A stretch of DNA of 64,000 bases from Octopus sinensis (taxonomy: Eukaryota). The stretch is from assembly GCF_006345805.1 (NCBI RefSeq), contig NC_043001.1:29698001-29762000 (forward strand). Reading direction: 5' to 3'. The translations under genes were made by a program, and so were the position numbers. This document shows positions 1,429 through 41,794 of this stretch, piece after piece. Positions within the stretch are counted from its first letter, which is position 1; every line of letters begins with the position of its first letter. The notes beneath the pieces are model-generated. The model was not told the DNA's origin, searched no databases, and worked only from the letters and a program-made list of their open reading frames with translations.

Positions 1429-1617
1429 CCCACTATCTGCATCTGAAGCTTGTACCTGATAAAGAGGTTGGCTAATACCTTGGCTTTCTTTTCTACATAT
1501 TTGAATAGACGGACCAGAAGTGATGACAGGAGAATGCAGATTTCTTGATACTAAAACAGTCACAACAGCAAAGGCACTTTTAGGTGGTTGTCCTCCATCA
1601 TTGGCGCTGACAAAAAT
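1429..1617 (-). CDS. Cadherin exon 24 (189 nt, A-type); gene continues beyond position 1
   Basis: ttttag|[63 protein letters not shown]|gtaag. Confidence 0.92.
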
Positions 1618-3042
1618 CTAAAAATAAAAGTAAACAAATAAAAAATGGGTCAGTTATAGGAAATAATAGTAAACAAGGAATGTGTTAAGATTATCATCTT
1701 AAAATGAATACGAACAGCCATGCTACATGGCAGTGAAACATGGGCCGTGACTGCTGAGGACATGCGTAAGCTCACGAGAAATGAAGCTAGTATGCTCCGT
1801 TGGATGTGTAATGTCAGTGTTCATAGTCGACAGAGTGTAAGTACCTTGAGAGAAAAGTTGGACCTAAGAGGCATCAGATGTTGTGTGCAAGAGAGACGAT
1901 TGCGCTGGTATGGTCATGTGGTGAGAATGGATGAAGATAGGTGTGTGAAAAAGTGCCACACCCTGGCAGTTGAGGGGACCTGTGGAAGAGGTAGACCCAG
2001 GAAAACCTGGGTCGAGGTGGTGAAGCACGACCTTCGAACTCTAGGTCTCACCAAGGAAATGACCAGAGACCGAGACCTATGGAAGTATGCTGTGCGTGAG
2101 AAGACCCGGCAAGACCAGTGAGAACAATCAAAATCAAATCATATATCAGAAAGCAGGGGTTAAGTGACCCATCCGTTCGTGTCCGCTGTCAGCCTCGTCT
2201 GGCACCCGTGCCGGTGATACGTAAAAGCACCATTTGCTTGTGGCCGTTTGCCAGCTCTGCCTGGCCCCCATGTCGGTGGCACGTAAAAGCACCGTCCGTT
2301 CGTGGCCGTTTGCCAGCTCTGTCTGGCCCCGTGTCGGTGGCACGTAAAAGCACCATCCGTTCGTGTCCGTTGCCAACATCGCCTGGCCCCGTGCCGGTGA
2401 CACGTAAAAGCACCATCCGTTCGTGGCCGTTCGCCAGCTCTGTCTGGCACCTGTGCAGGTGGCACGTAAAAAACACCCACTACACTCGCGGAGTGGTTGG
2501 CGTTAGGAAGGGCATCCAGCCGTAGAAACACTGCCAGATCTGACTGGGCCTGACGAAGCCTTCCAGCTTCACAGACCCCAGTTGACCCGTCCAACCCATG
2601 CTAGCATGGAAAGCGGACGCTAAATGATGATGATGATAATGATGATGATGAATGCTAGTATAATTGATAGTTATTGGGAGGCAATTATCTGCTGGCGTAG
2701 CCATACTAACACCGTATTATATTATTAAACTATTTGCTCAGATCGAATTGACTTAGACACATAGGTGGCATGCACAAATTAGCATTAAATCATTCTTAGG
2801 GTATTTTATAAAAATTATTATTTTATCATTTTGTTGTTGAATTCTAAGCCAACTTTGTTTCAGCAAACTTGGTCCAATAAAACTTGGCACCAGTCTTATC
2901 ATAAGTGTTGCTATCAGCCCACAAAGAACAGGGACACACACCACAGGGCATGCCATTCAACCCTCTGCTTGTTTTGAGAACCTTCCTCACACAATGCATA
3001 TGCATACATACACTCACACACACACACACACACAAAGATGCA

Positions 3043-3114
<72 letters not shown>

Positions 3115-5686
3115 CTGCAACACACAATTCTCACTGATAAGAATAACGTTTCTAAAATGGATAGAGAAACTCAAATGATTGTTTTGGTCCAGTGGTAGAA
3201 AGTTTGTCATGTTTTCTGAAGTTGTGGGTTCAAGTCCCATGGGCAGCCTTCAACTTCATCTATCCAAAGGGTTTTTTGACCCAATATTTACATGCTATTA
3301 TTTGTAGCTTTCTCTGCTTTGAATTTCACCATTCCAAAAAGGCTGAGCAACTTTGAAAAGTCTCCCTTATGTATTAGTTCATAGCTTAATCCCTTAGTTG
3401 AAAAGGCTCCCTTATTTATAAGTTCATAGTTTAACATTTAGTTGAAAAGGCTCCTTAATTTATTAGTTCATAATTTGATCAGAATGTTATACTAAATATT
3501 CCCACTATAAATGATATAAGTGATGAACACTGTGGGACATGATTTTTATTCTTGGGTAGCTACTGTTATTTCTTATTTGCTTAGAAAGTTTGAAAAATGG
3601 CTAATATTTGGGAACTTTTGAGAGAACTAGAAATAATTCTTTTTTAGAAGAGTGAATCTCAAAGCATACAAATAGGTAGGTAGGTAGATAGTTGGGCAGA
3701 GAGGTATGTATGTATGTATACATGCATGTATGTAGGTAGGCAGGTAAGTATGTAGGTAGGTAGATAGGTAGGCAGGTAGGTTGGTAGGTAGGTAGGTAGG
3801 TAGGTGTGTAGACAGGTGGGTAGCTTGGTAGATATGTAGGTAGATATATAGGTAGGTAAGTAGATAGGTAGGTGTGTAGACAGGTGGGTAGCTTGGTAGA
3901 TATGTAGGTAGATATATAGGTAGGTAAGTAGATAGGTAGGTAGATAGGTGGGTAGATAGGTGCGTAGATAGGTAGGTATGTATGTAGATATGTAGGTAGA
4001 TATGCAGGTGAATAGATAAGTAGGTAGGTAGATAGGTAGGTAGATAGGCAGGTAGGTGTGTAGACAGGTAGGTAGCTAGGTAGAGATGTGAGTAGGTAAA
4101 TAGATAGGTAGGTAGATTGGTGGGTAGATAGGCGGGTAGATAGGTGGGTAGATAGGTAGGTATGTATGTCAGTAAGTAGGTAGTTATGCAGGTGGATAGA
4201 TAGGTAGGTAGGTAGGTTTGGGTGGATTGATGGGTGGATGGATGGATAATTGTTATGCTTACATTTTAAATCAGGAGCTTTTATTTGTCTTTTTAATCAT
4301 TTTAAATTTTTAGTTTCACCTAACTTCAATAGAATATGCATCAGCATAACAGCTAACTTCATAATGTACATAATTTTGGTCTTCTGACCCAAATAGATAT
4401 ATCAGGTTTCTTATATTTACACTTGGTAGGAGTTTTGGGGAAATATTGGACCAATGTTCATTTGCTTGTATGTATGTTATGTCTGTAATATATGCAATGT
4501 ATGTCATCATCATCATCATCGTTTAACTAGCATGGGTTGGATGATTTGACTGAGGACTGGTGAACCAGATGGCCGCACCAGGCTCCAATCTTGATTTGGC
4601 ATGGTTTCTACAGCTGGATGCTCTTCCTAATGCCAACCACTCCAAGAGTATAGTGGGTGCTTTTACGTGCCACCAGCACGAGGGCCAGTCAGGCAGTACT
4701 GGCAACAGTCACGGAAAATCGTGTTTTTTTTTCTTTACATGTCACCTGCACACTGGTTCAAGTGCCAGTAAGGCGACGCTGGTAACAATCACGCTCGATT
4801 GGTGCTTTTTACATGCCACCAGCACGAATGCCAGTTAGCTGCTCTGGCAACGATCATGCTCAGATGGTGCTCCTAGTGCTCCGCTAGCACGGATGCCAGT
4901 CATCAAATTTGATTTCGATTCCGATTTCACTTGCCTCAACAGGTCTTCGCAAGCAGTGTCCAATGAAGGGAAGGTATGCATAAGCATGCTGGTTACACTC
5001 CCTGGCTTAGGTTATGTGTATATATGTATAGATATGTGGAGGTGCAATGGCCCTGTGGACTTGCAGTTGTAGGATTGCAGTTTTGATTCCCAGACTGAGT
5101 GTTGTGAGCGTTTATTTAGTGAAAACACCTAAAGCTCTATGAGGCTCTGGCAGGGGGTGATGGTGAACCCTGCTGTACTCTTTCACCACAACTTTCTCTC
5201 ACTCTTTCTTCCTGTATTTCAAAGAGCCAGCCTTGTCACACACTGTGTCACACTGAATCTCCTCGAGAACTACATTAAGGATACACGTGTTAAACGATGA
5301 TGATGATGATGATGATGTGTCTGTGGAGTGCTCAGCCACATGCACGATAATTTCACGAGCAGGCTGTTCCATTGATCAGATCAACTGGCACCCTTGTCAT
5401 CGTAACCGACAGAGTGGCACGATGTATGGATGGATGGATGCACAAAACATTCAGAAGAATGGATGGACAGATGCATGGGTAAATAGATTGCTGGATGGAT
5501 GGATGGATGGATGGATGGATTAGTGAATTTTTGTGCTTTTAAATGTTTGGGAGGAATGTGTTCAGTTTTTCAACTGAAATAAATCAGTGTTTATATACTT
5601 TATTAGCAGCTGAAGCTTCTTGAAACTGAGTTCAAATATTGATTAAAGGCTTATGATACATGATAAACTTCAGTCTTTAACATACA

Positions 5687-5720
<34 letters not shown>

Positions 5721-5739
5721 CTTACAAACGTACATATAG

Positions 5740-5795
<56 letters not shown>

Positions 5796-7224
5796 ATCCT
5801 GGCAGTTGAGGGGACCTGTGGAAGAGGTAGACCCAGGAAAACCTGGGTCGAGGTGGTGAAGCACGACCTTCGAACTCTAGGTCTCACCAAGGAAATGACC
5901 AGAGACCGAGACCTATGGAAGTATGCTGTGCGTGAGAAGACCCGGCAAGACCAGTGAGAACAATCAAAATCAAATCATATATCAGAAAGCAGGGGTTAAG
6001 TGACCCATCTGTTCGTGTCCGCTGTCAGCCTCGTCTGGCACCCGTGCCGGTGATACGTAAAAGCACCATTCGCTCATGGCCATTTGCCAGCTCTGCCTGG
6101 CCCCGTGTCGGTGGCACGTAAAAGCACCATCCGTTCGTGTTCGTTGCCAGCCTCGCCTGGCCCCGTGCCGGTGACACGTAAAAGCACCGTCCGTTCGTGG
6201 CCGTTGGCCAGCTCTGTCTGGCCCCGTGTCGGTGGCACGTAAAAGCACCATCCGTTCGTGGCCATTTGCCAGCTCTGTCTGGCCCCGTGTCGGTGGCACG
6301 TAAAAGCACCATCCGTCCGTGTCCGTTGCCAGCCTCGGCTGGCCCCCGTGCCGGTGATACGTAAAAGCACCGTCCGCTCGTGGCCGTTTGCCAGCTCTGT
6401 CTGGCAACCGTGTCGGTGGCACGTAAAAGCACCATCCGTTCGCATCTGTTGCCAGCCTCGGCTGGCCCCCGTGCCAGTGACACGTAAAAGCACCGTCCGT
6501 TCGTGGCCGGTTGCCAGCTCTGTCTGGCCCCGTGTCGGTGGCACGTAAAAGCACCATCCGTTCATGTCCGTTGCCAGCATCGCCTGGCCCCGAGCCGGTG
6601 ACACGTAAAAGCACCATCCGTTCGTGGCCGTTCACCAGCTCTGTCTGGCACCTGTGCAGGTGGCACGTAAAAAACACCCACTACACTCGCGGAGTGGTTG
6701 GCGTTAGGAAGGGCATCCAGCCGTAGAAACACTGCCAGATCTGACTGGGCCTGACGAAGCCTTCCAGCTTCACAGACCCCAGTTGACCCGTCCAACCCAT
6801 GCTAGCATGGAAAACGGACGCTAAACGATGATGATGATGATGATATATACAAGTTCAGTAAAAATTTAGATTCAGTTGAATATGGTACGTAAGTTAAAGG
6901 CACTAGAATTTGTTATGGTATTATCCCTATAAATCAAATGGGGTGATTATAATCAAAATAAGCAACAAGGATATCCAATGGTAGTGTAGTACAATCGTTT
7001 CATGTGACTTCATTTAATTAAACAATGCAAGTATTACATCAGTTCTAAAATGTAGAGCAATCTTCAGCTGCATATGGAATTTTTTAGTTGAATTGACAAT
7101 TCCATAGGCAGCTGAAGATTGCTCTACATTTTAAAACTGATGTAATACTTGCATTGTTTAATTAAATGAAGTTGCATGAACGATTGTACTACACTACCAT
7201 TGGATATCCTTGTTGCTTATTTTG

Positions 7225-7293
<69 letters not shown>

Positions 7294-7491: not shown

Positions 7492-7559
<68 letters not shown>

Positions 7560-10500
7560 AAGAAAGGAAAGAAGGAAGAAAGATAGATACATAAATACAT
7601 ACACACACATGCTATGTACATATTAGCACATATGTACACATCATTTCATTATATACAGATGCATACCAAAAAACTTTTACAATTATGAACATTTATAAAT
7701 TATTTTAAAATCTTACTTGGTAGGTACTCTGTGATGCTGTTCCAATTGATTTCTTCAAAGTTATTAATCCAGTGTTTGAATCTATGGCAAAGTAATTCTT
7801 TGCCTCATCATTTCCTTCTATACTGTAAGTGATTAAATTAAATGGTGCCTGAAAAGACAGTTACATAAACTTCTGTTATTATTTAAACTTCTTTCAAAAA
7901 AAAAATCTCATAATGGTATTATAATTTGTTTATCTTTAAACATTTATTGAAACATTTCTTTTGTCAACTTTAAACAATAGGTGTAGGCATGGCTGTGTGG
8001 TAAGAAGTTCGTTTACCAGCAACAGGGATCCAGGTTTGGTCCCACTGCACAGCACTTTGGGCTGGTGTCTTTTACCATAGCTTTCAGCCAACCAAAGACT
8101 GGATTTGGTAGATGGAAACTGAAAGAAATCTATCATATATATATATATATATATATACGACGTGGGTGCTGAAACATTCCTGGCTTTGGGTAACAGAAAA
8201 TAGAGAAGGAACAATTAATTATAGTTTTATCCAACATATTCCCCTCTCAGATTCACATACCTTTTGCAATGGTCCTTCAGTTGTTCTAAGCCCTATGAAA
8301 GATCCTTAAAGTTAGGAACTTTTCAGCACCTCCTTGTGTCTGTAAGTTCCAGGGATGATTTGTTTGACTGAAACCTTTCAAGGCAATGCCCCAGCTTGGC
8401 CACAGTTCAATGAGTGAAACAAGCAAAAGGTAAAATACAATACATACTTATAATTGTCACTGATTCTCAGACCAAAACTTTGAAACACTTCCATTCTGCT
8501 TGACATATAATAAAGTGCAATGTGTCACAATGCTGAACATATTACGTGGTTCAAATATGTAGAGAGAATGCCAGTTTGGTTGTATGATTTGTTTTCCAAC
8601 CACAAAGTCTTGGGTTTAGTCTGATTGTGTGGCACCAAGGGCAAGTGTCTTATACTATAGCCCCAGGCTAACCAAAGCTCATGGGAGCAAATGGGATTTG
8701 GGAGACAGAAACTGAAAGAAGTTTGTCGTATGTATGTATGTATGTATGTATGTATGTATGTATGTATGTATGTATGTATGTATGTATGTATGTATGTATG
8801 TATGCATGCATGTACGTATGTATGCCATTATTCAGTTTTATTTCAAGATTTCTTGCCAATAGAAAAAGAGCTGTTTTCTAACCTAGATCCAAGGCTCCAT
8901 CATTGTAATTCCAAGATCAACAGGGTGTTTTTGTATATATGTATATGTGCAGATTTGTTTGTATGTTTTGTTTTATGTATATGTTCTCATGTATATAGTT
9001 GCATGTCCATACATGCTCATATATACTTAAAAGATTAACTTCTGGAAAGTTTGGCAGCTTTTTACAGTTCCAGTGATAATTTGGATTTGCAGTCTTCAAA
9101 TAAGTTTTCTCCTTTCTGGTTTTAAGAAGTCTAATTTCTCATGATTGGTATTTAAGTAGTGTATTACAATGTATGTATGTATGTATGTATGTATGTATGT
9201 ATGTGTGTGTGTGTGTTTGTATTATGTATGTATGTGTGTATGTATGTGTGTGTGTGTATGTATGTACGTATGTGCATGTATATGTATGTATATATGTATG
9301 TGTATATGTATGCATGTATGTATGTATGTGTGTATGTATGCATGTATGTGTGTATGTATGTATGTATGTATGTATGTATGCATGTATGTATGTGTGTGTA
9401 TGAGTTTGTATTATGTATGGGTGTATGATGTATGTATGTATGTATGTATGTATGTATGTATGTATGTATGTATGTATGTATGTATGCATGCATGTACGTA
9501 TGTATGCCATTATTCAGTTTTATTTCAAGATTTCTTGCCAATAGAAAAAGAGCTGTTTTCTAACCTAGATCCAAGGCTCCATCATTGTAATTCCAAGATC
9601 AACAGGGTGTTTTTGTATATATGTATATGTGCAGATTTGTTTGTATGTTTTGTTTTATGTATATGTTCTCATGTATATAGTTGCATGTCCATACATGCTC
9701 ATATATACTTAAAAGATTAACTTCTGGAAAGTTTGGCAGCTTTTTACAGTTCCAGTGATAATTTGGATTTGCAGTCTTCAAATAAGTTTTCTCCTTTCTG
9801 GTTTTAAGAAGTCTAATTTCTCATGATTGGTATTTAAGTAGTGTATTACAATGTATGTATGTATGTATGTATGTATGTATGTATGTGTGTGTGTGTGTTT
9901 GTATTATGTATGTATGTGTGTATGTATGTGTGTGTGTGTGTATGTATGTACGTATGTGCATGTATATGTATGTATATATGTATGTGTATATGTATGCATG
10001 TATGTATGTATGTGTGTATGTATGCATGTATGTGTGTATGTATGTATGTATGTATGTATGTATGCATGTATGTATGTGTGTGTATGAGTTTGTATTATGT
10101 ATGGGTGTATGTATGTATGTATGTATGTGTATGTATGTACGTATGTATGTGCATGTATGTGTATGTATATATGTATGTGTATATGTATGCATGTATGTAT
10201 GTATGTATGTATGTATGTATGTATGTATGTATGTATGTATGCATGTATGTATGTGTATTTTGAGAAATCTCGAGTTGCACATGAGAAAGTAAGGAGGGAT
10301 GTCAGGAAGGGCATCGCTGTTACACTTCCAGATGGAAAGGGTCTTCCTATGATGCTGGCATGCAGTGTCTGTGCAAGACTCTGCCTCAGTAAAGCGGGAT
10401 TCAAGAGTCATTTTCGTAGTCATAAAGCGAGACAGATGAGTGACAACCTGGCCACTAGTGGTAGTGTTACACACCATACTAATCATATCTGTCAGGCATG

Positions 10501-12845
10501 TGGAAGAGAGTGTAATTCCACAGGAGGACTTAAATAACATGCAAAGGCACATGAAGCCCAGTTACAACTACAGCTGGCTATTGCCAGTAAAGCTTTTAGC
10601 TGCCAATTCTGTACAAGTCATTGTAGATCTTTAGCTGGGCTAAAAAGTCACATTTGATCACAGCACCAATAACAGGTAAGCTTCGTGCAATGGCCATACT
10701 CGATAACGATGGTGCAACCATCATGTATGTGTAACTGTTTTTTTGACTTGACTTCCTGTGATAGTTGTAAACAAGTGCCTCTGCAATGTAAGCAGTGCTC
10801 TTTGTTTCCAGTTTATCAAGAAAACATGTCTGGGCATGGGGAATATTACCTTGCTTGGAAACTGGACCAGTCTTTGAATTACAGAATATGACAAGACTGA
10901 ATCTCCTTGAGAACTACACTAAGGTTATGTGTGTCTGTGGAGTGCTCAGCTACTTGCACGTTAATGTGTCATGAGCAGGCAGTTCCATTGATGTGATCAA
11001 GAGGAACGCTCATCATCATAACCGACAGTGGCAGAAAAAATATTAACAGAAAAAAATTGAAGCACAGGACTGACCAATGCCTTGGGAGTGAATTTGTAAA
11101 TAAAAACTGTGTGGAAGCCCATCACACACACACTCATGTTTGTTTGTTAGTGTGTGTGTGTGTCTTTGGTGCCTGTATGTGGTAGTTATATCTCCATAAC
11201 TTAGTCGTTTGACAAAAGAGACTGACAGAATAAGGGCCATGATTTAAAAACAAATAAGTACTGGTATCAGATTGTCCAATTATAAACCCTTCAAGGTAAT
11301 GCCCCAGCATGGCCATAGTTCAATGAGTGAAGCAAGTAAAAAATGAAAAATAAAAAATAAAAAAGAGAAAGAAAAGAAGCAAAGAAGCAAAGAAAAATCA
11401 AAACACTTACATTAGTATCCTGATCAGAAGCTAAAATTTGGGCAATTTGTTCACCAGGATTTGCTGTTGAGCTGATACTTTTTTCAATATATTTCTCCGT
11501 AAAGGTTGGTGAAAATTTATTTCTCTGTACCTGAATGGTAACTTTAGCATCAAAAGTAGAGGAACGTGGAGGATCTCCTTGATCTTGGGCTGCTATTGTA
11601 AGCTGAAATAAAAAGATTATTTTAAAATGAATTTTATTTTGTATCAGTGAACATCTTTCAAATTTTTCTGTCTAAAAGGGTTTTCAACTCAATATTTAGA
11701 TACTATTATTTATAGCCTTATATGCTTCAAGATCCATTGGTCAAAAAAAAAAAAAGCAATTATCTCACATTCTCTTGAAAGTTTTTAAAATTCTTGTGAC
11801 ATTTTGAATTTTAATTTAATTGATTTTTTTATGAGTTAAAATAGAGATTTAAATTCAATAACATCTTTTTTGTATTCTAATTAATTTCACATCAAAACCT
11901 GTTCACTATTGCTCAATTATTTTGATATCAATATCTAATATCCTAAACGATATAATCTATGAGAACTTGTAATGTTTCAAGGTAAGTGTTGGATATTTCT
12001 TTCATAGTTTCATTGAAATATATTACAATTTTCTTTATGTTTATTACAGAATTATTAAAATTTCACTTACGGTATAGGAGTTATCACTGTCTCCAGAAAT
12101 ACTTTGCATTAAAGAAATAGCACCAGTCACTGAGTTTATATAAAACTTGTCAGATTTAAACGATGGTTTAATTGAATAAGAAATTACATTGTTGGGGCTC
12201 TGTGAATAAAGAAAAAACAACATAAAAGTTTAATTAATTAATTATTTTTTTTTGAAAAGGCTTCTTAGAATAATTATTATAACATTAAAACTATAAATAT
12301 ATTATAAAAAGGATTTTTTAAATATTTTAAACTATCAGTATTGCCCGGCATTGCTCAGGTTTGTAAGGGAAATACCTATATAAGCATTTTTAGAGATGTA
12401 AAGTATAATAGCCATCTCAATATGGCTAACCACAAAGTGGGGGGGTGTTACTGTAGCTTTTTACATTTTGAGATTTAATAATAAATTTTTAGAGAGTTAC
12501 TTCCCTTATATATGCCAAAAATGCATTAAAAATGGGAAAAATTGATGGTAAATTTTTTTTTAAATCGTAGACTCATCATAGATGTGCGCTAATACCCAGA
12601 AGGGCTCGATATAAATCACGACTATAAGATACCCGGTTTTGGTTAAACTGCACCGCAAAATGTGGGAGTAGTTAGGAATCTAAATCGTAGGAGACAGACA
12701 GCACACAACCTCACTTTTATATATAAAGATTTAACACACCAACATATTCTAAATTGGACACCATAAGAGTGTTTGAAGTACAGTATTGAGAAATCATAAT
12801 TTACATACAAAGTTTTTTTTCACTATACACACACACACATGTGTG

Positions 12846-13269: not shown

Positions 13270-14332
13270 CCTCTGCTGGTGACAAAAGGCCTCTCGCACA
13301 GAGTGAAAGGCAGACTGTATGATGCGTGTGTACGAACAGCCATGCTACATGGCAGTGAAACATGGGCCGTGACTGCTGAGGATATGCGTAAGCTCGCTAG
13401 AAATGAAGCCAGTATGCTCCGATGGATGTGTAATGCCGGTACTCACACTCGGCAGAGTGTAAGTACCTTGAGAGAAAAGCTGGACCTAAGAAGCATCAGT
13501 TGTGGTGTGCAAGAGAGACGTTTGCGCTGGTATGGTCATGTGGCGAGAATGGATGAAGATAGTTGTGTGAAAAAGTGCCACACCCTAGCGGTTGAGGGAA
13601 CCTGTGGAAGAGGCAGACCCAGGAAAACCTGGGACGAGGTGGTGAAGCACGACCTTCGAACTTTAGGTCTCACTGAGGAAATGACTAGAGACCGAGACCT
13701 CTGGAAGTGTGCTGTGCGCGAGAAGACCCGGCAGGACAAGTGAGTCCACAACCCGTGGCCTTCTACATGGGATGGAGCCAGCCTACGTATGCATACCTTC
13801 CCTTCTTGGGACACAAAACTCTACTTGTGAAGACGTGTTGAGGCAAGTGAGGATCAGAATCGAAATCGATCAATGGAAATTGCGGATGTGCTACCAGTGC
13901 CGGTGGCATGTCGAAACTCTGCTTGTGAAGACCCATTGAGGCAAGTGAGGATCAGAATCGAAATCGATCAATGGAAATCGATCAATGGAAATTGCAGATG
14001 TGTTACCAGTGCCGGTGGCATGTAAGAGAACTTTCCGTTTCGCGACCGTTGCCAGCACTGCCCCGTTTCGTGTCCGTTGCCAGCCTCGCCTGGCCCTCGT
14101 GCCGGTGGCACATAAAAAGCACCATCCGTTCGTGGCCATTTGCCAGCTCTGTCTGGCACCAGTGCGGGTGGCACGTAAAAAGCAGCCACTACACTCACGG
14201 AGTGGTTGGCGTTAGGAAGGGCATCCAGCCGTAGAAACACTGCCAGATTTGACTGGGCCTGATGAAGCCTTCTGGCTTCACAGACCCCAGTAGAACCGTC
14301 CAACCCATGCTAGCATGGAAAACGGACGCTAA

Positions 14333-14365
<33 letters not shown>

Positions 14366-26060: not shown

Positions 26061-27768
26061 TTAAATACATTATAAGGAAAAGGGAAATTATGTAATGAAC
26101 TTCATTAGCTTACAGTTGTTTCTGCTAGGACAAACAGTGCACTTTGAGTTAGGTGCTTGTGCATCACCTTATAGCTTCCTCAGAGCTTCTAAAGTGAAAT
26201 GTAAGTTTATTTGCTTGCATTAAATGCTCTGCATCTTATAGCAGAAACAACTGCATACTACAGTATACTTTGATTAACATGTGGGTGTGTATGTGTGTGT
26301 GTACATGCATGAGTGTGAATGTGCATGTGTGTGTGTGTCTGTGTATGTGTGTGTGTGTGTGTGTGCGTACGTACAAAAGGCCTTCTCAGTTTCTGTCTAT
26401 CAATTTCACTCATAAGATATTGGACAACCTACAGCTATAGCAGAGTGTGTTAGACAACAATATCCATGTAATAGGAATGAACCTCAAAGTAGATTCAAAA
26501 CAAACTTCTTAACCAAGGCTGTGTGGTGAGAATTTTGCTTCCCAGTCACATGACATTGGCTTCAGCTCCTCTGCATAGCACCTTGGGCAAATGTCTTCTA
26601 TTATAGCTTTGGGCTGACCAAAGCTTTGTGAAGTGATTTGGAAGACAGAAACTGAAAAGAAGACCAATGTGTATATGCATGTGTGTGTGTGTGTGTGTCT
26701 TTGTCTTTGTGTCTGTCCCCTACAAAAGCTTTACAACCAGCATTGGTTTGTTTACATCCTCATAACTTTGTGGTTTGACTAAATAGACTGATAGAACAAA
26801 CACCAGGCTTTAAAATAACAAGTCCTGGGTCAATTCATTTGATTAAAAACCCTTCAAGGTAAGGGTATTGCCCCAGCATGGCTGCAGTTTAATGGCAAGT
26901 AGAAGAGAAAATAAATAAACGAAATAAATAAATACAGCCACACATATACACATGCACTCACACACATACATAGATATCTTTGTCATTCACTGTGTTTTGT
27001 CATGGAGAAAATTTCTCACTGCAGACATATTTGTGTAAATGCACCCAAGCCATCTTGTACTCTTTATTTCAGTCTTCATATCTACATGAGTCTCATACAC
27101 TGATCTGTTATAGCAGAATTTTGGTGAAAGAAACAGAAATAGGAAATTTACCTTGAATGGAGTTATTGAAGTTGCAGATAAAAACTTTGCTGTTTCTATC
27201 AGGCCTGTAGTACTATCAATTTTGAAAAAGTTTTTAGCTTCACCATCTCCAATTATGGAGTAAGTAATGACATTAAATTGAGGCTGAAATTCAAAGAGTA
27301 AATTGAGTAATTAAGATTAAAAAAATTTTTTTTTTATTTAAAGATATATTTTACAGCATTTAAACAATCAAGTAATAATATCACAGTAGATTACAAACTC
27401 TGTCTTCAAAAAAATTTTTAGTTATATTGCCTTCAACAATTTTGGGTGAGAGGTTAAGTCAATTACATCTGCCCCAGTTCTGAACTGGTACTAATTTTAT
27501 TGACCCCAAGAGGATGAAGGTCAAAGTCGATCTTGGTGGAATTTGAACTCAGAATGAAGAGGTCAATGAAATACTGTTAAGCATTTTGTCTAATGTGCTA
27601 AAGATTCTGCTTCACTGGCATATAAGATGTGCTTTTTTGTCTTTTGAATGTATCAAAAAATAGTCCTGCTTCTAATATGATGTAGGTTAGGGTGTCAGAT
27701 GAACATAAGTTCACTAGGTACAATAACTGTTTTGTCTTGTGCTTTTTTTCAGCTTCAGGTACTGCACA

Positions 27769-27811: not shown

Positions 27812-30800
27812 TGATGGCAGCCACACATGCCCAGCCCTGTTAAAAATACTCTTGATGCATTGAGAAGACCTGTTGAGTCAGGTAAAACCAATATCGTAAA
27901 TGAGAACAATGCCCCCTGGCTGGCTCCCGTGCTGATGGCACATAAAAGGCATCATCCAAATGTGGTCAATACCAGGTCCACCTGATTGGCTCCTGTGCCT
28001 GTGGCACTTAAAAAACACCATCCGAATGTGTTTGTTGCCAGGCCTGGTTCTAGTGCTGGTGGCACGTAAAAAGCACCAACCGATCGTGACTAACACCAGT
28101 ACCCCCTAACTGGTTCCTGTGCTGGCGGCATGTAAAAAGCACCATCCAAACATTGTCATTGCCAGGCCCGCTTTACTGGCTCCTGTGCCGGTGGCGCGTA
28201 AAAAGCGTCCACTACATCCTTGGAGTGGTTGGCATTAGGAAGAGCATCTAGCTGTAGAAACTCTGCCAGACCGGATTGGAGCCAGGTGCAGCTGCTGGCT
28301 CTCCAGAACTCAATCAAACCGTCTAACCATGCTAGCATGGAAACGGACGTTAATCGATGATGATGATGATTGATACATACATATATACATGGTCTTTGCA
28401 TTTGTTCAGTCCACTGTAACTACAGTCTGACCTCTGGTCAGGAGAACTTTGATCAAGAGCATTCTAGCCATATCCATACCAATTTTAACTTAGTGTATTT
28501 AGGACCACATTATCCAGTGTACACTAGTTTTTATATTATTAAGTAGGATATAATTTAAGGAAGACTTGGTTACTATTTCTAACAGGTCAAATGATCATGT
28601 AGAAGTTTCCTCTTAGATTCAACTTGATACAGTAATAATATACTTTAATCTATATAATCTCTTTTGACCACTTAAAAACTGGATTTCTGGATATTGACCT
28701 CATTTGCTGCAAAATATATTGCATTATTCTGTTGATCAAAACAATTTTTTCCACCTGCTTTGCTTCACACATACTAGTTGTTCTAGGAATTAACTAGTAA
28801 TAGGAATTTGAACCAGCACAGGAGCTTATCTTTTATGAGATTAGCATATTAAACTTATTAAAGCTGCAACCAACTTATTCTTTAAACAAATACCGTTATG
28901 AAATATCCTAAAACTTCAAGTTCAATGTTGTCACCATATGTCCATATGCTCAATAAAATATTGTATATACGGCAATGTTTTATTGAAATTATATGTTCAA
29001 CATAAAGATAAAACACTCGTATGGAGAGATCTTCAGTCAGTCAAAATTGACCATGCATATGCATGTCTATACTCAGGTAAGACTTTTTTTGAAGAAGAAG
29101 AAGATGGACAATTGCTCATGAATGTAAGTCTTCCCTCTAGAAGCCACCAATGTTTATTCAAAATAAAGGTCACCAGTAAATGATATAGTTTAGCACCATT
29201 ATCAATGCAAGCATTGTTAGTAGAATGCAAAGAGCTGGAACAGGAAAAACATAGCATCTTACCTAATCCACTGCCCTGTACTGGTATTATGTCATCAATC
29301 CCAAAAGGTTAAAAATCAAAGCTGATCTCAGTGGGATTTGAACTTGAAGTACAAAGAATCAAATCAAGTACTGTGAGGCATGCTCTACTGATTTTTACCA
29401 GTTCACTACCTTGACAACACTAAGTCAGATAACTATGCAAGTATAACACAAGAAATCAACAGCCTTTCTAATAAAATACACATTTCTTAATAACTATGAT
29501 CCTGGTCATCCAACTGGAATGGTATTCATTCCAAACTTCAGGCAAAATAGTCTCTTTTAACCCTTTCGTTACCGTATTTATTTTGAGATGCTCTGTGTTT
29601 CTTTCAATTATTTTAAATATAACAAAGAATTTAGTAAAATAACTTAGTTATCATTAAGCTAGTATTAGGAATATAAATTGCGACTAAGGTTTGGTGGTAT
29701 ATTTTGATGCAAAACTTATGGAAAAAAGACATTTGTACTACAGAGCTAGAGCCAGGTTGGTAACGAAAGGGCACTTTAGCCAGCATTTATGGAAATGAAC
29801 ATCACATTTATTTCATAAATATCACAAAGAAGAATTCTAAAACAAATTTTAATTCTTGCAAATTCATACAGCTCATTATGAAGTTATCAAAACAGATACG
29901 TAAAGAAAAGGAAAATTAAGTAAAAATTACTTACATCAGAATCATTTGCATAAACTCGAATAACGTCTTCGTTAATTGGACTATTTTCCGCGATGTCTGT
30001 AGTGAAATCTTTTATGAAAAAGACTGGTGGTTTATTATTCCTTATAATGTCTATATTTACATTTGCTGTTTTGTCAGCTGTTTTGGGAACAGGAAGCCCT
30101 TTATCTGACACTCTCACTTCAAACTAAAAGAAAACAGAGTAAACAATTGATTTAATATTGAGTTAATATTTATTATGTTTAGTATTAAAAATTTAATATG
30201 CAATTTTTCATTTTATTTCATTTAAATAGTTTTCATTTTTAGACACATACACACACACACACACACATATACATTCTTACACACACATACATACATTCTT
30301 AAACACACATACATACATTCTTACACACACACATACATACATACACACATTCATGCACACACACACACACACACAGGTGTATTTCAGACTAGTGAAATAC
30401 ACTGGTCCATCAAATCAATTACACAATTACACTAATTAGCTTGTGTCCCAAAAACATTCATTAGAATATCTATTTCTTTATTGCCCACAAAGGGCTAAAC
30501 ATAGAGTGGACAAACAAAGACAGACATAGGTATTAAGTCATTACATCGACTCCAGTGCGTCACTGGTACTTAATTTATCGACCCCGGAAGGATGAAAGGC
30601 AAAGTCGACCTTGGTGGAATTTGAACTCACAACGTAACAGCAGACGAAATACTGTTAAGCATTTCGCCCGGCGTGCTAACATTTCTGCTAGCTCACCGCC
30701 TTATCATTATGTGTCTTCTCATACAATGTAAGTCCACCATGAAATGAATGCTGCAGAGTATAAAGTCCTAAGGCAGCAGATAGTATGAGTGAGCCTCATG

Positions 30801-33622: not shown

Positions 33623-33660
<38 letters not shown>

Positions 33661-36600
33661 GGTATGCGTCGCCCCTCCAATGCCTTTTTTTTTTTTCATT
33701 CTAAATGTTCTTAACTGGAAATAGATGGCCAAGAAAAGAAATAGTCAAGTAGAAGAATTTTGGATATATGAAATTAACAGTTTTATTTTGATATCAGATT
33801 AGTTTTTTTAAAACTTACCGAAAAAGATTTGATTGCTTGATCAGCTGCTGGAGAGCGAATAAGTATAACCTCTCCCAAATCATTGACTGAAAAATATTGA
33901 ACTGCATTGTTGGTGCTGATTATCTCATACTTCAGTTCATTATGAGGTGGCTTGAGAAAGAAACATAAATAAAACAAAGTTAAAATTTCGACAAAGAAAG
34001 CTGAAAAAATTTCTAGCCTTATATACAATTTTTAAAAATCTGAATAGCCTAACTTTTCATTGTTAAATTATGGAGTTCTAAAAGTTCACACGGCATATAT
34101 CAGACTGAGACTGAATTGGTATTTCTATTAAGAAATGCTAAACTGTGTGTTTTGAGAAGGTTAGAGATGAAAGACTATGTTACTAAAAGTATTTATTGAG
34201 AGTCTTCTTGTCTGTTTCTAGCATAGATATTTGTATTATTGTAATAATATTGGAGAGAAATGCATGCATGTAACTCCATAATGCCATAAACTCCCCAAAG
34301 AATGCATAAGGATGATGCATTTTTCTATAGGTATATCTATCCATCAGGTAATATACATGTATAAACAATATATGAGTAAATTATATAAAAATATGGCAAT
34401 ACATATGCATATCAATCCATATACATATGTATATAATCATATCACCATCACCATCACCATGACCAACCAGGGTATCAGATGTTGCTACACATTGCTGGTC
34501 ACAATGCGTTTCACATTGTTTTAGCCTTCAAATGATGCCATCCCACTGGCTCAGCGAGCAGGCCAACAGAAGAAAGAGTGAGAGAAAGTTATGGTGAAAG
34601 AGTACAGCAGGGATTTCCACCACCCCCTGTCAGAGCCTTGTGGAGCTTTAGGTGTTTTTGCTCAATAAACACTCACAACGCCTGGTCTGGGAACCGAAAC
34701 CACGATCCTACAACTGCGAGTCTGCTGCCCTAACCACTGGGCCATTGCGCCTCCACATATAATCATATATGTACATATATATACTTATGTGCACCAATAT
34801 ATATATACTGACAGGGAAACACACACATATGTGTACATCCTAAAGCTTACGCATCACTTGTATCCTCAAATGCTTATGTGCGCTTTTATAAAGTGCTTAT
34901 TATAAATGCATAGGGATTACAAAAAATTAATTTTATACAATCCTTTTTCACAACTCTAGGAAGTAACTTGTGCAAAAGAATTAAACAAAGCTAGTTTTAT
35001 GTAACCTTCATGCAAGTGTCATTTGGATGATTTGAAAAATAATTGGCAGATTTAATACAGACATGAAAAAATCATAATTGCAATTGTTGCTATTTTTACT
35101 GATGGATTTTCTTTACTCAGCTTCTAGTGTATGGATCCATGTATAATTCAAATACTAGGAAATTCTTGCTGTTCAAAATATCATTATAAACCAAAAGTTG
35201 AATTATATTAATTTTCTAATAAAAAAAAATTGGAAATATAATTAGTTGTTCTATGTAAAACAATAAATGAAATTAAGGAAAAAATATTACTGCACGGTCT
35301 GAATCTGAAGCAGATATTTTTAGGATTGCAGTATTCAATGGGAAGGTCTCTTGAATTTGCTTGCTGTAAGTAGTTTCTTGCAAAATTGGTTTATTTAAAT
35401 TCCTTTCAACATTCACCACAATAACACATGTAGTTTGTTTTCCTCCACCGTCTTTGGCATATATGGAAAGCTGTCAAAAAGTAAAGTTATAAAAAGTTTG
35501 AAATTATAATGAGAAGATACTTATTATTACATTTTTTCTATTTATCTATTCGGTTGAAGAAAGCAGGATGGCACTTATGCCCTTTAGATGCTTTTGTGGA
35601 ATGGTGAGGTAACTGTGACCGATGTTCAGTTTGATCTGCTTCAGAGCAAGGGTGGAAGTTGCAGAGAGATTGAGTAAAGTGTCTAGTAATAGAGACTAGT
35701 AATAGAGACACTGTATAGATTATTAAAGACAGATAAACAGCAGCACTATGGAATTCTGAATTAAGGGAGTGCATAGATGGCATGTTCAGAGAAGTTAAAA
35801 CTAAAAAGAAAACACATCATATTAGTTAGCTAAAGGCCATATGTGTATATGAAAGGCCATAAATGAACAGATAAAAGTGACTTTGCCAAATAAGCAAGAT
35901 TACATCGTTTGAGATGTACTTTGTTTGCGTACATATATAAATAAAATATAGTCTCTTCCTGATTAGATAATGTTTATTTGGAGCGAAGGGTTTAGGTGGC
36001 TCAAATGAAACATAAGAAAAACAATGTCACGGGACCTTATCCGAAGGCTGTGATTGGTTGGCTTACATACTGGCGCGAAATAAGTCGAGAGACAAACTGC
36101 GCCAATGCCAACCAATCAGAGCAGTGGACACAACAGGGTCAAAATAGCCGAAGATGGTTGTTATCTAATGCGAGATCATTTCTAATATATCTCTCAAACA
36201 GTGAGGATATCACTCACGCTACAAAGTTATACATTGTGCATTCATTTTCTATGAATTCTATGGCGAGGCGTCCTTCATAATGCCAACACTTTAAAGTGTG
36301 TCCTTGGAGCTTTTTTCATGCTATCAGCACTAGTAACTTGCAAGACGGTAACTTGCAAGACGGAGACAGAGAACAGCAACTAGTGATGAGAAGTACTTGA
36401 GGGAAGAGGAGGCATTTTAATATCAAGGCTAAACATGATAAAAGACAAGTATAGATGTCTTGTTGCAAAAGGGATGCATAGCTACCACTCATTATATAGG
36501 GTTGGCTAAGAATAGCTGTAAATGAGAATTTAAGTGTTAGCTTAGATAAAGTGTCTCATAGTAATGAATTGAAACAAGACAGGATATGAAATCTCAAAAA

Positions 36601-39600
36601 TACAACTGTTACCTTACAATACCACCAGACTGAATTTTATACAAAAACTGAGCATGAATATTCAAGTAAAAAAAAACCTTCCTCACCGTATAGCTTAATG
36701 AAGAGTCCTGGGTCAGTGATTTCGCAATTTTTATGTTACCAGTATTTGAATCAACTTGAAAGAGAGTCATGGAAGGTAAATCTCCAGCCAGTTGATATTC
36801 AATTGTACCATATTTCTAAGAAGAAAATTGAAATCATCATCATCATCATCATCAACAACAACACTAGATAATAATATCATCATCAGCAATAACAATATGT
36901 ATCAAGAAGGCTGTCTCTAAGGGTTTCTGTGACTTACTAGAACAGTATTGAATTCTCCCTCAAATTATGCTCTAACATTTTAAAAATGGAAGGAAATAGG
37001 AGACATTGTATAATTTAGTCTTAGATACAGTATGTCTGAAATAAGATTGTATAGTTACAGATAGAATGTCATCCACAATAATATATTCTACCCAAGATAA
37101 TGTTGTATAGTAATCATCATCATCATCATCATCGTTTAACGTCCGTTCTCCATGCTAGCATGGGTTGGACGGTTTGACTGGGGATCTGGGAAGCCAGAAG
37201 GCTGCCCCAGGCTCCGGTCTTATCTGGCAATGTTTCTACAGCTGGATGCCCTTCCTAACGCCAACTACTCCGTGAGTGTAGTGGGTGCTTTTTACATGCC
37301 ACCTGCACTGGAGCTAGGCGAGGCTGGCATCGGCCACAGTCAGATTGGTGCATTTTACGTGCCACCTGCATGGAAGCCAGTCGAGGCGGCACTGGCTTCG
37401 GCCACGATTCAGATGGTGCTTTTTACGTGCCACCGACACGGAAGCCAGTTGAGGCGGCGCTGGCATTGGCCACGATTCGGATAGTGCTTTTTATGTATCT
37501 CCAGTCCAGGGGTCCTGGCATCTGCTAGGTGCCAGTCATAGGATTGGTTCAATTTCGATTCCGATTTCGATTTCACTTGCCCCAACAGGTCTTCGCAAGC
37601 AAAGGGGGGTAGGCATAGGTGCCTGTCGTCGGATGAGGTTCGATATCAACTTCGCTTGCCTCAACAGGGCTTTGTGTGTCCAAGGGAGGAAAGGCATGCA
37701 TAGAGTAATGATAGAGAGATATCAAAAATTAGGTACAAGGATGTTCTAAAGGATTCTATTGGTGTCCTTTCCATTGAATATCATCAGTGGAGTGTTTGTG
37801 TGTATGTGTGTATGTGCATGTGTGTGTGTGTGCATAAGTGTTATGTGTTTGAAATCTGAAATTTAGAGTGATGTGAATCCATTTGAAATTTAGTGTAATA
37901 TGAATCAATTTGCAATCACTCCCTAGTCAGTGAAACATTTCAATACTTACATTATTATCTGCATCAGTAGCCTTCACTACAGCAATCACTTCATTTACAG
38001 GCCTGTTCTCCTGAATGGTCACTGGTGCAATATTTTGGCAAACAGGAGAGGCAGTGTTGCGTATGACATTGACAGTGAGAATTCTTGACTGACTGAGCGA
38101 TGGAGTACCGCGATCAGTGCCGATGAGAGTAATCTAAAAAATAAGCAAACACCCATTGTTATAGAAAAATCTACAAACTTGACAAGCAATAAAAGAATAT
38201 AAAGAGCAGGGAATCAAACCCATACCTACATGCATGCATAGACTCACATAATCTAAGGCCCATTACCACGCAGTATCCTACAATTTACAAATACTTCATA
38301 CAGATTATCATCTGCTTGAGAAAGAAACCTTTTGTAATGAACAGTAAAACTTCTAAGATTTTTCCAACTATTTTATTTCCTTGGTAACTGGTTACTTTAG
38401 CTACAACTAGTTACATTAGCTGTATGTGGTCAGTGGTTGAACATATAAACCCCTACATCATTACATTATCTTGTGACTATCAAATGCATTTTACTAAGAT
38501 AGAAACCATTTTACTAGGACACTTAAAATGAAACAAAAAAAATGGATTATATAGAAATATTATTTCATATGCTCTTTCACTCATAAGATAAAGACCTCTC
38601 ATAATAATTCTTTCTACTATAGGTACAAGGCCTGAAATTTTGGTGGGTGTACTAGTTGATTATTTTGACCCAATCTTTCACTGGTGCTTAATTTATCAAC
38701 CCTGAAAAGATGAAAGGCAAAGTCAATCTCAATGGAATTTGAACTCAGAATGTAAAGACAGATGAAATACCTATTTCTTTACTACCCACAAGGGTCTAAA
38801 CACAGAGAGGACAAACAAGGGTAAACAAACGGATTAAGTCGATTATATCGACCCCAGTGCGTAACTGGTACTTATTTAATCGACCCCGAAACGATGAAAG
38901 GCAAAGTCGACCTCGGCGGAATTTGAACTCAGAATGTAGCAGCAGACAAAATACTGCTAAGCATTTCGCCCGGCGTGCTAACAATTCTGCCAGCTCACTG
39001 CCTTGAGACCTCCCATAATAACCCTGTCTACTCTAAGCACATGGCCTGAAATTTTGGGGGAGGGGGATAGTTGATTATATTAATCCCAGTACTCTAACTG
39101 GTACTTATTTTATCAACCCCAAAAGGATGAAAGGTAAAGTCAACCTCAGCAGGATTTGAACTCTGAACATAGTGGCAGATGAAATACTGCTCAGCATTTT
39201 GCCCAGCATGCTAAGGATTCTGCCCGCTTATCACCTTATAATAATAATAACAGTCACCAGTCCAATTTCCTTCAAAACCATTTTTCCTTTCCTTTCTTTC
39301 TTTTAGCTGGAATATACTCATGTACAAATGTGATCAGTACTCAAGTATATATTATTTTATTTATGTGCCCTTTTCAAGCCTAGCCAGGCTCGGGGGCCCG
39401 GTTTCCTGGTTTCTGTGGTGAATGTGTTCCTCCCAGCTGGACAGGACACTAGTCCATCACAGCGTTACCCAAGAAACAGAAAGAAAGAGTGAGAGAAAGT
39501 TGGGGCAAAAGAGTACAACAGGGATCGCTATCACCCCCTGCCAGAGCCTCATGGATCTTTAGGTATTTTCACTCAATAAACACACACAATGCCCGGTCTA

Positions 39601-39973
39601 GGAATCGAAACCACAATCCTCCGACTGTGAGTCCACTGCCTTAACCACTGGGCCATTGTGCCTCCACACTCAAGTATATGTGACAATTTGTTATTAAACA
39701 ACAGATGCAGCATTTGTTTAGAATAACATTCTGTATATCTTACTTATTCTGTTTTTTTCATTTGTTTCAATCATTTGACTGTGGCCATGCTGGAGCACCC
39801 CCTTGAAGAATTTTAGTTGAACAAATCAACCCCAGGACTTATTTTTTATGCCTATACTTACTCTATCAATTTGTTTTGCCAAACCACTAAGTTACAGACA
39901 TAAACGCACCATCACCAATTGTCAAACAGTGACAGCAGGGGACAAATACAAACACACACACACACACACACAT

Positions 39974-40010
<37 letters not shown>

Positions 40011-41794
40011 ACACACACACACACACAAATGACAGGCCTCTTTCAGTTTCCGTCTACCAAATCAACTCACAAGGCTTTAGTCGGCTCAAGGCTATAGTAG
40101 AAGACACTTGCCCAAGATGCCATGCACTGGAACTGAACCCAGAACCATGTGGTTGGGAAGCAAGTTTCTTACCACACAGCCATGCCTGCACCTTTAGTGT
40201 AGATAAATTGTAGAAAGCCACAACACTGTGGTATTCATCATGAGAAAGCATCTCGTATAGAAGTAGAGGGCTAAAAACACAGAATTTTTTCTGTAACAGA
40301 CAGAAAATGTCCAGCAGTGACAGTGAAATTGCTATATCTGGATTTCTACATCTTTGTACATCATCCATAGCAAGTATCCACTTTCAACTAACAAATGCTT
40401 AGACAAATTTTGCCCTTATTGATATAGAAAAATAGTCGTTAACAAATAACTGGTGTCACAAATAGCTGGCAGGATGGCTAAAATTTAATTATTAGCAGAG
40501 GAAGACCCTCATATTTCATTGAGTGAGTGAAGAAAAGAATGTAACATTTCTTCTATGTGAATGGAAGAGGACTGGTTAATTGAACCTTCAGCTACACTTG
40601 TGGCCATCTTCAGAGTAAAGAAGTAAATAATTTAAGAATTAATATAATTGTGAGTCATCTTAATCAGTAATATGAATCTTACTAATAAGAAATTATTAGT
40701 AATAATAAATTATTACAGCTCACTAATAATTTTGGTTGAAAGGGATACATAACTTGATCTCACTCCTATGAGTTATAATATAATGAAATTGTGGGATGGC
40801 ATGCATGCCTACATACATACAGACATACACACACTCATACATATATACATTATACCAATGTCTTATCTGCTAAAAGGATTTCTTATTTAAGGATAGATTT
40901 CTGTGTAATAATAACAAAGGGTCATCTATTGATCTTCCCACATTTAATGGACATTTTATAAAGCCTTATTCTTTGGTTACTTGTTGAAGCAGTTCTTCAA
41001 TAATTTGGATTTACAGAAGTCCTTAGGCTATTTTGATAACTTTATCAAATCTCTATAAAAGTCAGATAATTGCTTACTTACTGTATAGGAAGTGCTTGAA
41101 TCACTTGTGAGTGGCTTACTAATACCAACATTTCCAGTTACTGGGTTCAGGTAAAACAAATCCGTTCCTGCACTTGGAGTAATGGAAGAAATCCGAAAAA
41201 CTACATCACTGTTTAATGTATTCTGCAAAAAAGAAAAAAACAACAATAAACCATAGAAAAATTGAAAAAGAAAAAAACCTAGAAGATAACAAAAAAATAG
41301 TTTGCAAACAAGTAAAAAAGGAACAGAGCACCACCACATGGTCTAGTTCTTGTTACGGTTTGGTGGCTTATGTGCCTCAATGACCCTGAGAGCTATGCCA
41401 ACAGAGCACAATTTCCTGGTAGGGCTCCCATGTTGGACAGGTTCAAAGGATAGAGGCCAAACTAATATGGACCACCTCTACCCAGAGGTAAAAATGGGTT
41501 TGGGTAGGACCAACCCCCAATCTAGAATAAAGCAAAGTTACAGAAATATCAATGGCAATCCAAATTCAACAACACCTGGGAGAGGAAGGCTTTCCCTCTG
41601 GAAGAGTGCTCCCCATACTGAGAGAGTGGCCCTGCTCATAGTCAAGAACAGTGGAGAAAGGACTCCAACGACTTATGCTCCATAGACAGCAATAGGCTTA
41701 AGTGAGTAAGAATACAGTGAGTTTATGTATGTTTGCACTTATATATGTGTGTGTATGCATGGATATTTATGTGCTTCTGTGTGTACATGTGTGT

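Follow-up and report, generated by a model that had tools for sequence, protein, structure and literature searches.

The stretch of DNA analyzed here, 64,000 nucleotides of Octopus sinensis contig NC_043001.1 (NCBI RefSeq assembly GCF_006345805.1, positions 29,698,001 to 29,762,000; hereafter the window, numbered from its first letter), contains the middle part of a giant cadherin gene on the minus strand. Both ends of the gene lie outside the window, and it runs on past window position 1. The DNA is eukaryotic and AT-rich (~36% G+C), with abundant simple and interspersed repeats, and the window alone encodes at least 13 cadherin repeats. Our subject is the region from 41222 to 1429, in which eight consecutive linkers between repeats read xRNxxxP in place of the canonical DXNDN. 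These are referred to below as RN linkers, and the joints which they form as RN joints.

RN linkers and exon structure in the window

The region from 41222 to 1429 was resolved from the open segments of the minus strand into 16 exons, all in phase 0 and separated by GT-AG introns, which together encode 851 residues without a stop. The AG acceptor of each exon is preceded by a pyrimidine tract. Analysis of the 851-residue product with Pfam gave eight Cadherin domains (PF00028, E = 1.1e-109), which places it in the cadherin superfamily. Each repeat of the run is encoded by two phase-0 exons of different kinds, an A exon of 180-192 nt which begins at the F strand (A-x-D-x-G), includes the linker and ends with the DxD of the repeat that follows, and a B exon of 129-141 nt which encodes the middle of the repeat. 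A first-pass annotation of the same DNA had described a run of seven such linkers. All seven strings that it quoted were found on the minus strand, from 38064 down to 1528, and the limits that it gave, 41222 and 1429, are genuine exon ends; the count, however, must be raised to eight, as ERNLNKP (35407-35387) had been overlooked and one whole repeat skipped.

The canonical calcium motifs of cadherins are XEX, DXD, D(R/Y)(D/E), XDX and DXNDN (PMC7547225, PMC5120219), and residues are numbered here as in E-cadherin. In the following, brackets after an A exon give the F-strand motif, the linker with its coordinates, the XEX residues and the DxD of the next repeat, while those after a B exon give the residues at the LDRE position. 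Read along the minus strand, the run opens with exon B0 at 41082-41222, the middle of its first repeat (LTSD; phase 0, cag/AAT...ACA/gtaagt), followed by A1 at 37951-38133 (GTDRG, IRNTASP 38064-38044, QEN, TDAD). The two exons missed in the first pass are B1 at 36687-36815 (LTQD) and A2 at 35291-35470 (AKDGG, ERNLNKP as located above, QET, SDSD). The run continues with B2 at 33819-33950 (PAAD), which has 54% identity to residues 594-639 of Haliotis P0003, A3 at 29935-30123 (VSDKG, IRNNKPP 30045-30025, AEN, NDSD), B3 at 27152-27283 (LSAT), A4 at 25529-25714 (AKDNG, NRNLNSP 25645-25625, GED, TDKD), B4 at 22518-22646 (LLSD), A5 at 21304-21486 (AFDLG, QRNLNTP 21411-21391, SEN, NDND) and B5 at 19676-19816 (LTKE). 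Exon A6 at 16306-16491 (AADNG, DRNRNTP 16422-16402, NET, TDAD) supplied the central linker of the AlphaFold2 model described below. The last exons are B6 at 12071-12199 (ISGD), A7 at 11411-11602 (AQDQG, QRNKFSP 11527-11507, SST without Glu, SDQD), B7 at 7717-7848 (IGTA) and A8 at 1429-1617 (ANDGG, SRNLHSP 1548-1528, SDAD).

Read by the canonical motif scheme, the RN joints have every site-3 side-chain ligand intact and have lost the ligands specific to sites 1 and 2, as the first-pass annotation had held. Asn102 is present in all eight joints, D100 in one (the D of DRNRNTP), and D67 and D103 in none. DxD and xDxG are likewise found in 8/8, with the reservation that one F-strand motif (VSDKG) has Val for the expected Ala/Gly. 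Two further statements were correct in part. Loss of the LDRE motif is complete at the D67 position (8/8), whereas six of the eight retain Asp or Glu at the E69 position (LTSD, LTQD, PAAD, LLSD, LTKE, ISGD); and the Asn said to stand early in every B exon is present in seven, KYGT being the exception. The XEX Glu (E11) is retained in six of the eight joints. The window sequence thus has the features of a partial, site-3-only linker, in which the DRE and DXNDN acids are lost and the linker Asn, DXD and XDX are kept, and not those of a fully calcium-free linker, in which all five motifs are absent; across the family, conservation of DXD and XDX reaches 98-99%. Of the linkers in 139 unrelated giant cadherins, 1.4% are RN-type strings, and Arg occurs as the x of DxNDN in 1.8%. 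The RN linker pattern is not due to chance. N-glycosylation was considered as a reason for the conserved Asn and rejected, as the residue is not part of an N-x-S/T sequon in any of the eight linkers in the window.

Upstream of the run, exons between 62752 and 44764, also on the minus strand, encode repeats with canonical or other non-RN linkers. The exon at 62591-62752 (open frame, acceptor tatag/GTT, donor TCG/gtaata; collinear with Mytilus P0024) joins the end of one repeat to the beginning of its successor through the canonical linker DKNDNPP, at the position of the linker between extracellular cadherin (EC) repeats 4 and 5 of the family. The exon at 60602-60780 ends in ...PESL plus 2 nt of a split codon and joins in frame to position 58083 of the exon at 57948-58083, which has a non-canonical linker at the EC5-6 position. 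These are followed by exons at 53811-53904 (...AIPGQ; 5' boundary, 53904 or 53902, and phase uncertain), 52453-52581 (canonical linker NVNDNPP), 51367-51419, 48217-48448 (the LDYE-type motif FDYE and linker LDLPDSIP, matching residues 223-295 of Haliotis P0003), 47103-47309 (AVDLDTT...LDYEAK...NVL, 49-55% identity to Haliotis and Elysia orthologues) and 44764-44880, in which DVNDNAP, at the EC8-9 position, is the last canonical linker. The junction from 57948 (phase 0) to 53904/53902 does not close in frame. An exon of ~30 residues is expected between them, corresponding to the DxD...F-x-I part of that repeat, which is present in Haliotis; a hidden Markov model (HMM) applied to every open segment, a tblastn search with the corresponding Haliotis sequence and inspection by eye all failed to find it. 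The exon may have been lost, the assembly may have a gap, or the repeat may be degenerate.

An interspersed repeat recurs in the introns in either orientation, with 76-94% identity between copies, at 1709-2646, 5798-6850, 13331-14360, 27979-28368, 37107-37604, 42490-42847 and 48763-49246. Some copies contain internal tandem units of ~60 bp (6005-6672), and the copies produce long spurious open frames on the minus strand. The intron between the exons ending at 11411 and beginning at 7848 contains a tandem duplication of ~683 bp at 8720-10190 (8720-9507 versus 9403-10190, 97% identical), rich in (TATG/CATA)-like microsatellite.

Conservation of the RN linker in lophotrochozoans

The best relatives of the window product have 31-39% identity to it, are all molluscan and contain 3-12 RNxxxP linkers each, whereas non-molluscan cadherin matches contain 0-2. 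Haliotis P0003 is a positional orthologue, with linkers DTQDSIP, DQNDFTP, IRNTAP, NKNLNAP, IRNANPP, TRNFQRP, FRNNNAP and NRNLNPP; individual window repeats have positional orthologues in Haliotis at 34-47% identity, in which the motif is kept. A much closer orthologue, P0178 (UniParc), most likely comes from another octopod. It is 81-88% identical to the window product, keeps every RN in the matching repeats, and extends beyond the end of the window with at least 12 more RN repeats. The P0178 model has no equivalents of exons 33950-33819 and 30123-29935, nor of exon 12199-12071, which may reflect alternative splicing or an error in the gene model. Since all exons of the RN run are symmetric (phase 0-0), skipping of an adjacent B and A pair would delete exactly one repeat unit in frame.

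Use of a single-repeat alignment (alignment A1) as the query for homologues returned only nine short fragments. An exhaustive profile search over 1.8 billion representatives identified RN-rich giant cadherins in Haliotis, Patella, Potamilus and Bulinus, in the brachiopod Lingula anatina and in the nemertean Tubulanus polymorphus, so that the lophotrochozoan cadherin class which the first-pass annotation had proposed does exist and spans Mollusca, Brachiopoda and Nemertea. A census was made of 295 linkers from 26 related proteins (molluscs, one brachiopod and one nemertean), of which 211 are strict RN linkers. Arg occupies position 101 in 86% of the 295, and Asn102 is conserved at 94% in the repeat profile. 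Among strict RN linkers the next repeat has D134 in 182/185 cases, D136 in 184/185 and D195 in 168/169, and across the family the site-3 ligands (Asn102, DxD, xDxG) are 94-99% conserved. By comparison, the D67 position is acidic in 12/196, D100 is Asp in 16/211, and the D103 position is mostly Leu. E11 is acidic in 141/176 and the E69 position in 128/198. The octopod repeats, the positional Haliotis orthologue and the linker census agree in showing one conserved alternative linker design in which both Arg and Asn are kept, as had been predicted. No description of the RN linker, or of a giant PCDH15-like cadherin in lophotrochozoans, was found in literature searches.

Several RN-type giant cadherin models lie on the same chromosome or contig in Patella vulgata (P0139, P0156, P0202) and in Haliotis rubra (P0002, P0005). 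These co-located models may represent tandem paralogues, or else a single very large gene whose model was split.

Relationship to PCDH15 and Cad99C

The relatives of the window gene are named in databases as 'protocadherin Fat 4-like', 'Fat 1-like', 'cadherin-23-like' or 'CELSR-like'. As in Fat and CELSR proteins, there are many cadherin repeats with generic repeat similarity, and CELSR1 (8vy2) was the top PDB match by total score. In other respects the RN family differs from both. The C-terminally complete members (Tubulanus, Lingula, Patella, Octopus) and the full-length Potamilus P0209 have no EGF, laminin G or seven-pass domains; they have one transmembrane helix and a conserved tail which is different from that of Fat or CELSR, and when P0209, P0160 and P0067 were analyzed with Pfam, cadherin-type models alone scored above threshold. 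A Fat or Fat-like identity was rejected because these three proteins have no EGF or laminin G domains, and a CELSR/Flamingo identity because they have no HormR/GAIN or seven-pass domain and only one hydrophobic helix.

The features that the members do possess are PCDH15/Cad99C-like; they comprise an EC1-3 module, a membrane-adjacent domain, one transmembrane helix and a cytoplasmic tail that terminates in T-x-L. The first-pass annotation had treated PCDH15 as a mere comparison; the gene itself appears to be of PCDH15/Cad99C type. At the N-terminus, Mytilus P0024 matches PCDH15 in the PDB in one collinear stretch from the end of EC1 into EC4 (E = 6.6e-27). The EC2-3 linker D-x-D-D-(L/Q)-x-P, followed at the start of EC3 by a Cys pair (Cys-x5-6-Cys-x-(N/H)-P-x-Y), is common to Mytilus P0024, Potamilus P0209 and the arthropod orthologues, and the corresponding linker of human PCDH15 is DGDDL (PMC7547225). 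The window exons for EC4-9 are collinear with members that have this PCDH15-like N-terminus. When the EC4-9 repeats themselves were searched against the PDB, matches were generic for cadherins, with PCDH15 collinear but not best, and these repeats alone thus do not identify the family.

For the C-terminus, an HMM was built from the ~130-residue pre-membrane domain, the helix, and the motifs SRY..Y and EYETQSLNMYVPPDE. Against ~290 proteins, including ~140 other giant cadherins, only two convincing matches were obtained beyond family members and tail fragments: Bemisia P0084 (1e-32) and the Homarus 'cadherin-99C-like' protein P0075 (4e-28). Each alignment of Bemisia P0084 with PCDH15 structures, over the range EC2 to MAD12, forms one collinear stretch, and the protein is a bona fide PCDH15 orthologue. 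The RN family shares with the arthropod orthologues the juxtamembrane motifs RY..Y and YETQ.L.M.VP.D. Searching the PDB with a profile of the C-terminal module (profile A2) gave PCDH15 MAD12-TM structures as top matches (6c14, 4.7e-5; 6c13, 1.9e-4), so that the membrane-adjacent domain has a profile match to MAD12. A protein search with the Octopus tail recovered molluscan fragments only, and the PCDH15 link of the tail emerged only with a profile and by way of the arthropod orthologues. The tails end in TTIL (Octopus P0067), RTEL (Lingula), TTML (Potamilus) and TTEL (arthropods), each a predicted PDZ-type T/S-x-L ligand.

The cytoplasmic tail is conserved between molluscs, brachiopod and nemertean (C-termini of P0067, P0139, P0148, P0160 and P0209), with the motifs E(T/V)QSL.M(Y/F)(V/I)PPD(D/E), LGE(I/V)N(M/L).F, NP.(Y/F) and the terminal T-x-L; in Lingula the ETQSL/ETKSL motif occurs three times. 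No Pfam family covers this tail. One protein with a molluscan-type last repeat, membrane-adjacent domain and tail, P0284, comes from the EukProt transcriptome of Piridium sociabile, a protist parasite of a whelk, and most likely represents host contamination.

Canonical and atypical linkers are mixed in the RN family as they are in PCDH15. Repeat number sets the two apart, PCDH15 having eleven and the RN family ~28 or more, with ~28 in the full-length Potamilus P0209 (3387 aa) and 25-38 in other members. The array of EC9-like units joined by xRNxxxP has no counterpart in vertebrate or arthropod PCDH15, and, again unlike PCDH15, there are several RN-family paralogues per genome in Patella and Haliotis. 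In family members the RN run starts exactly at the EC9-10 joint and continues as an array of ~15-20 or more repeats. With the RN-repeat HMM, EC9 of the arthropod orthologues scored 71-84 bits compared with 5-46 for their other repeats, and EC9 was also the best stretch in three PCDH15 PDB chains covering EC8-11. Against this HMM the arthropod EC9 repeats (P0075 796-895, P0084 723-822) reach the scores of true RN repeats. The EC9-10 linkers of these two proteins, SVERVIAEPP and VFIRHATTVPP, contain the Arg but not the Asn, and the Arg may predate the RN array. The best reading of these alignments is that the family arose from an ancestral cadherin of PCDH15/Cad99C type, in which an EC9-like unit on a symmetric exon pair would have been amplified and its joint would have gained, or retained, a site-3 calcium along with the Arg. 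The RN family is possibly a co-orthologue of PCDH15/Cad99C, lengthened by this array. As its repeats far exceed eleven, it is classed here as a lengthened relative and not as a plain PCDH15 member.

A published survey reports that PCDH15 was lost in the oyster C. gigas (PMC10734073). The Magallana gigas protein P0281/P0294 (A0A8W8I2M9) groups with proteins that carry the RN-family transmembrane helix and tail, which are of PCDH15 type. The reported loss may reflect a very divergent giant orthologue that went unrecognized.

Predicted roles of calcium and arginine at the RN joint

The closest precedent for the RN joint is the EC5-6 linker of PCDH15. There XEX is replaced by YTD, DRE by IVG and DXNDN by PPNNQ, while DXD and XDX are mostly kept as DRE and SDG, and in all crystal forms the linker holds one Ca2+, at site 3 (PMC7547225). 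Site 3 is also the site of highest affinity in CDH23 EC1-2 (PMC7547225). As in EC5-6, the RN joint has no DRE and DXNDN acids and keeps the linker Asn, DXD and XDX. Because of this precedent and the intact site-3 ligands, one Ca2+ per RN joint, as the first-pass annotation had proposed, is the best-supported reading, and each joint probably binds it at site 3. The two cases differ in other respects. PCDH15 EC5-6 is a single joint, conformationally variable, with no Arg and with its XEX Glu lost; the RN joint keeps the Glu, has a near-invariant Arg, is used eight times in the window and more than 20 times in orthologues, and is modeled in an extended geometry.

Covariation between position 101 and 105 other alignment columns was analyzed by Fisher test after removal of every repeat with at least 60% identity to an earlier one. 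The XEX residue was acidic in 158/191 joints (83%) with Arg or Lys at 101, compared with 5/21 (24%) otherwise (p = 6.4e-8). This was the strongest association among the 105 columns, the next having p = 0.0045. The acid at the E69 position followed a basic residue at 101 only weakly (58% versus 33%, p = 0.04), and the site-3 ligands of the next repeat were conserved with or without Arg at 101. Covariation of residue 101 with E11 is what a direct Arg-Glu ion pair predicts, and fits a salt bridge from Arg101 to the XEX Glu in the place of sites 1 and 2; it lends specific support to the Arg salt bridge which the first-pass annotation had suggested.

A pair of window repeats joined by DRNRNTP was modeled with AlphaFold2 (predicted local distance difference test score, pLDDT, 94; predicted template modeling score, pTM, 0.76; blocks at the joint 93-98). 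The model superposes over both repeats on straight calcium-bound pairs with a root-mean-square deviation of 5-7 Å, compared with 14 Å for the bent PCDH15 EC9-10. A Foldseek search with the two-repeat model returned generic cadherin pairs and no specific nearest structure.

Taken together, we consider it reasonably probable that the window gene encodes a lengthened PCDH15/Cad99C relative with one site-3 Ca2+ and an Arg101-Glu pair in each joint of its RN array. Every joint would retain the linker Asn102, DxD, xDxG and the backbone positions 104 and 143 as site-3 ligands, and replacement of D67, D100 and D103, mostly by Thr/Ala, Asn/Ile/Leu and Leu respectively, would abolish sites 1 and 2. A single Ca2+ would remain at site 3, as in PCDH15 EC5-6. 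The near-invariant Arg101 would have the surviving XEX Glu as its main partner and the E69-position acid as a weaker one, neutralizing acids left without calcium, and together with Leu103 would occupy the space of Ca1 and Ca2. The predicted outcome is a long extended filament of ~4.5 nm per repeat, the integrity of which would depend on just one site-3 calcium per joint, and by analogy with PCDH15/Cad99C it may serve as an apical link of microvilli, cilia or stereovilli.

Several observations weigh against this account. Just 21 of the linkers used for the covariation have no basic residue, and the repeats share descent; the result is unchanged when those of at least 60% identity are removed, but such removal is no correction for phylogeny. 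In the window, the joints that follow SST and CRK, two of eight, have the Arg without the Glu. The acids at E11, E69 and D136 could hold a second Ca2+ at site 2. With respect to family identity, the PCDH15-like N- and C-terminal modules were observed in family members, both ends of the window gene falling beyond the window, and the tail-bearing Octopus P0067 is possibly a paralogue. When the last repeat and membrane-adjacent domain were modeled with AlphaFold2 from six sequences, the pLDDT was only 37 and the MAD12 fold was not confirmed, and the Octopus P0067 tail alone had no significant match in the PDB.

Of the alternatives, the one that survives best, although we judge it unlikely, is that the joints bind two Ca2+, at sites 2 and 3, by means of E11, the E69-position acid, D136 and backbone carbonyls, with the Arg pointing outward, for example to contacts with a cis-dimer or partner. 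Two-calcium partial linkers do exist in PCDH15 (EC2-3, EC3-4), and 80% of RN joints keep E11 while 65% have an acid at E69. However, the site-2 ligands D100 and D103 are absent in more than 90%, the two-calcium linkers of PCDH15 keep the D100 position (as in DGDDL), and an outward Arg is not expected to co-vary specifically with a calcium-ligand Glu.

Slightly less probable again is a joint with no calcium at all, in which Asn, DxD and xDxG would serve hydrogen bonding or folding and the joint would be either held by protein contacts or flexible, as in DN-cadherin EC2-3 and PCDH15 EC9-10. The RN joint does resemble the calcium-free linkers of DN-cadherin EC2-3, PCDH15 EC9-10, LI-cadherin EC2-3 and Fat/Dachsous in departing from the three-calcium design within a long cadherin and in exchanging calcium ligands for uncharged residues (Leu103, Thr/Ala67). 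Most site-1 and site-2 ligands are gone, and the likely ancestral linkers, those of EC9-10 in arthropod PCDH15, have the Arg and not the Asn, while EC9-10 of vertebrates is calcium-free. Such calcium-free linkers, however, retain none of the motifs, not even DXD and XDX, are frequently bent, and are reported to have no sequence motif in common (PMC5120219). In PCDH15 EC9-10, for example, DXD and XDX read AIN and DSL. The RN joint has a strong consensus with intact site-3 ligands, the conservation of which over three phyla, at 98-99% for DXD/XDX and 94% for Asn102, is hard to explain without a ligand role, and in PCDH15 EC5-6, where the losses are similar, site 3 is indeed occupied by Ca2+.

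That the motif is merely the trace of a recent tandem duplication of one atypical repeat, without selection on Arg or Asn, is very improbable: the uniform two-exon phase-0 unit does point to an origin by tandem duplication and all repeats resemble one ancestor, EC9, but the window repeats are only 21-44% identical to each other, so that their shared motif is not a recent copy, the Arg and Asn are nonetheless invariant, and the motif is kept in the Haliotis and octopod positional orthologues and holds in the brachiopod and nemertean proteins.

Until now, atypical cadherin joints have been reported as isolated exceptions without a shared motif. The RN linker is a strongly conserved alternative design, used dozens of times in one protein and retained in at least three phyla, and the RN joint offers a natural test case of how far the charge of a side chain can replace calcium and with what effects on stiffness and calcium dependence. 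If the preferred account of one site-3 Ca2+ and an Arg-Glu pair per joint is true, the RN joint would be a genetically encoded, calcium-sparing cadherin linker with mechanics of its own, and would offer a design idea for engineered cadherin rods that are shortened or calcium-insensitive. With respect to the evolution of the tip-link family, we hold more tentatively, as a plausible proposal that may well prove wrong, that PCDH15 was not lost in lophotrochozoans and that its EC9 was amplified to give a filament of 25-40 repeats in which an Arg-Glu pair replaces two of the three Ca2+. These data suggest that PCDH15 survives in molluscs, brachiopods and nemerteans as a giant protein misnamed 'Fat 4-like', which, if true, would be a candidate for the long links, whether apical or ciliary, of sensory and epithelial cells in lophotrochozoans.

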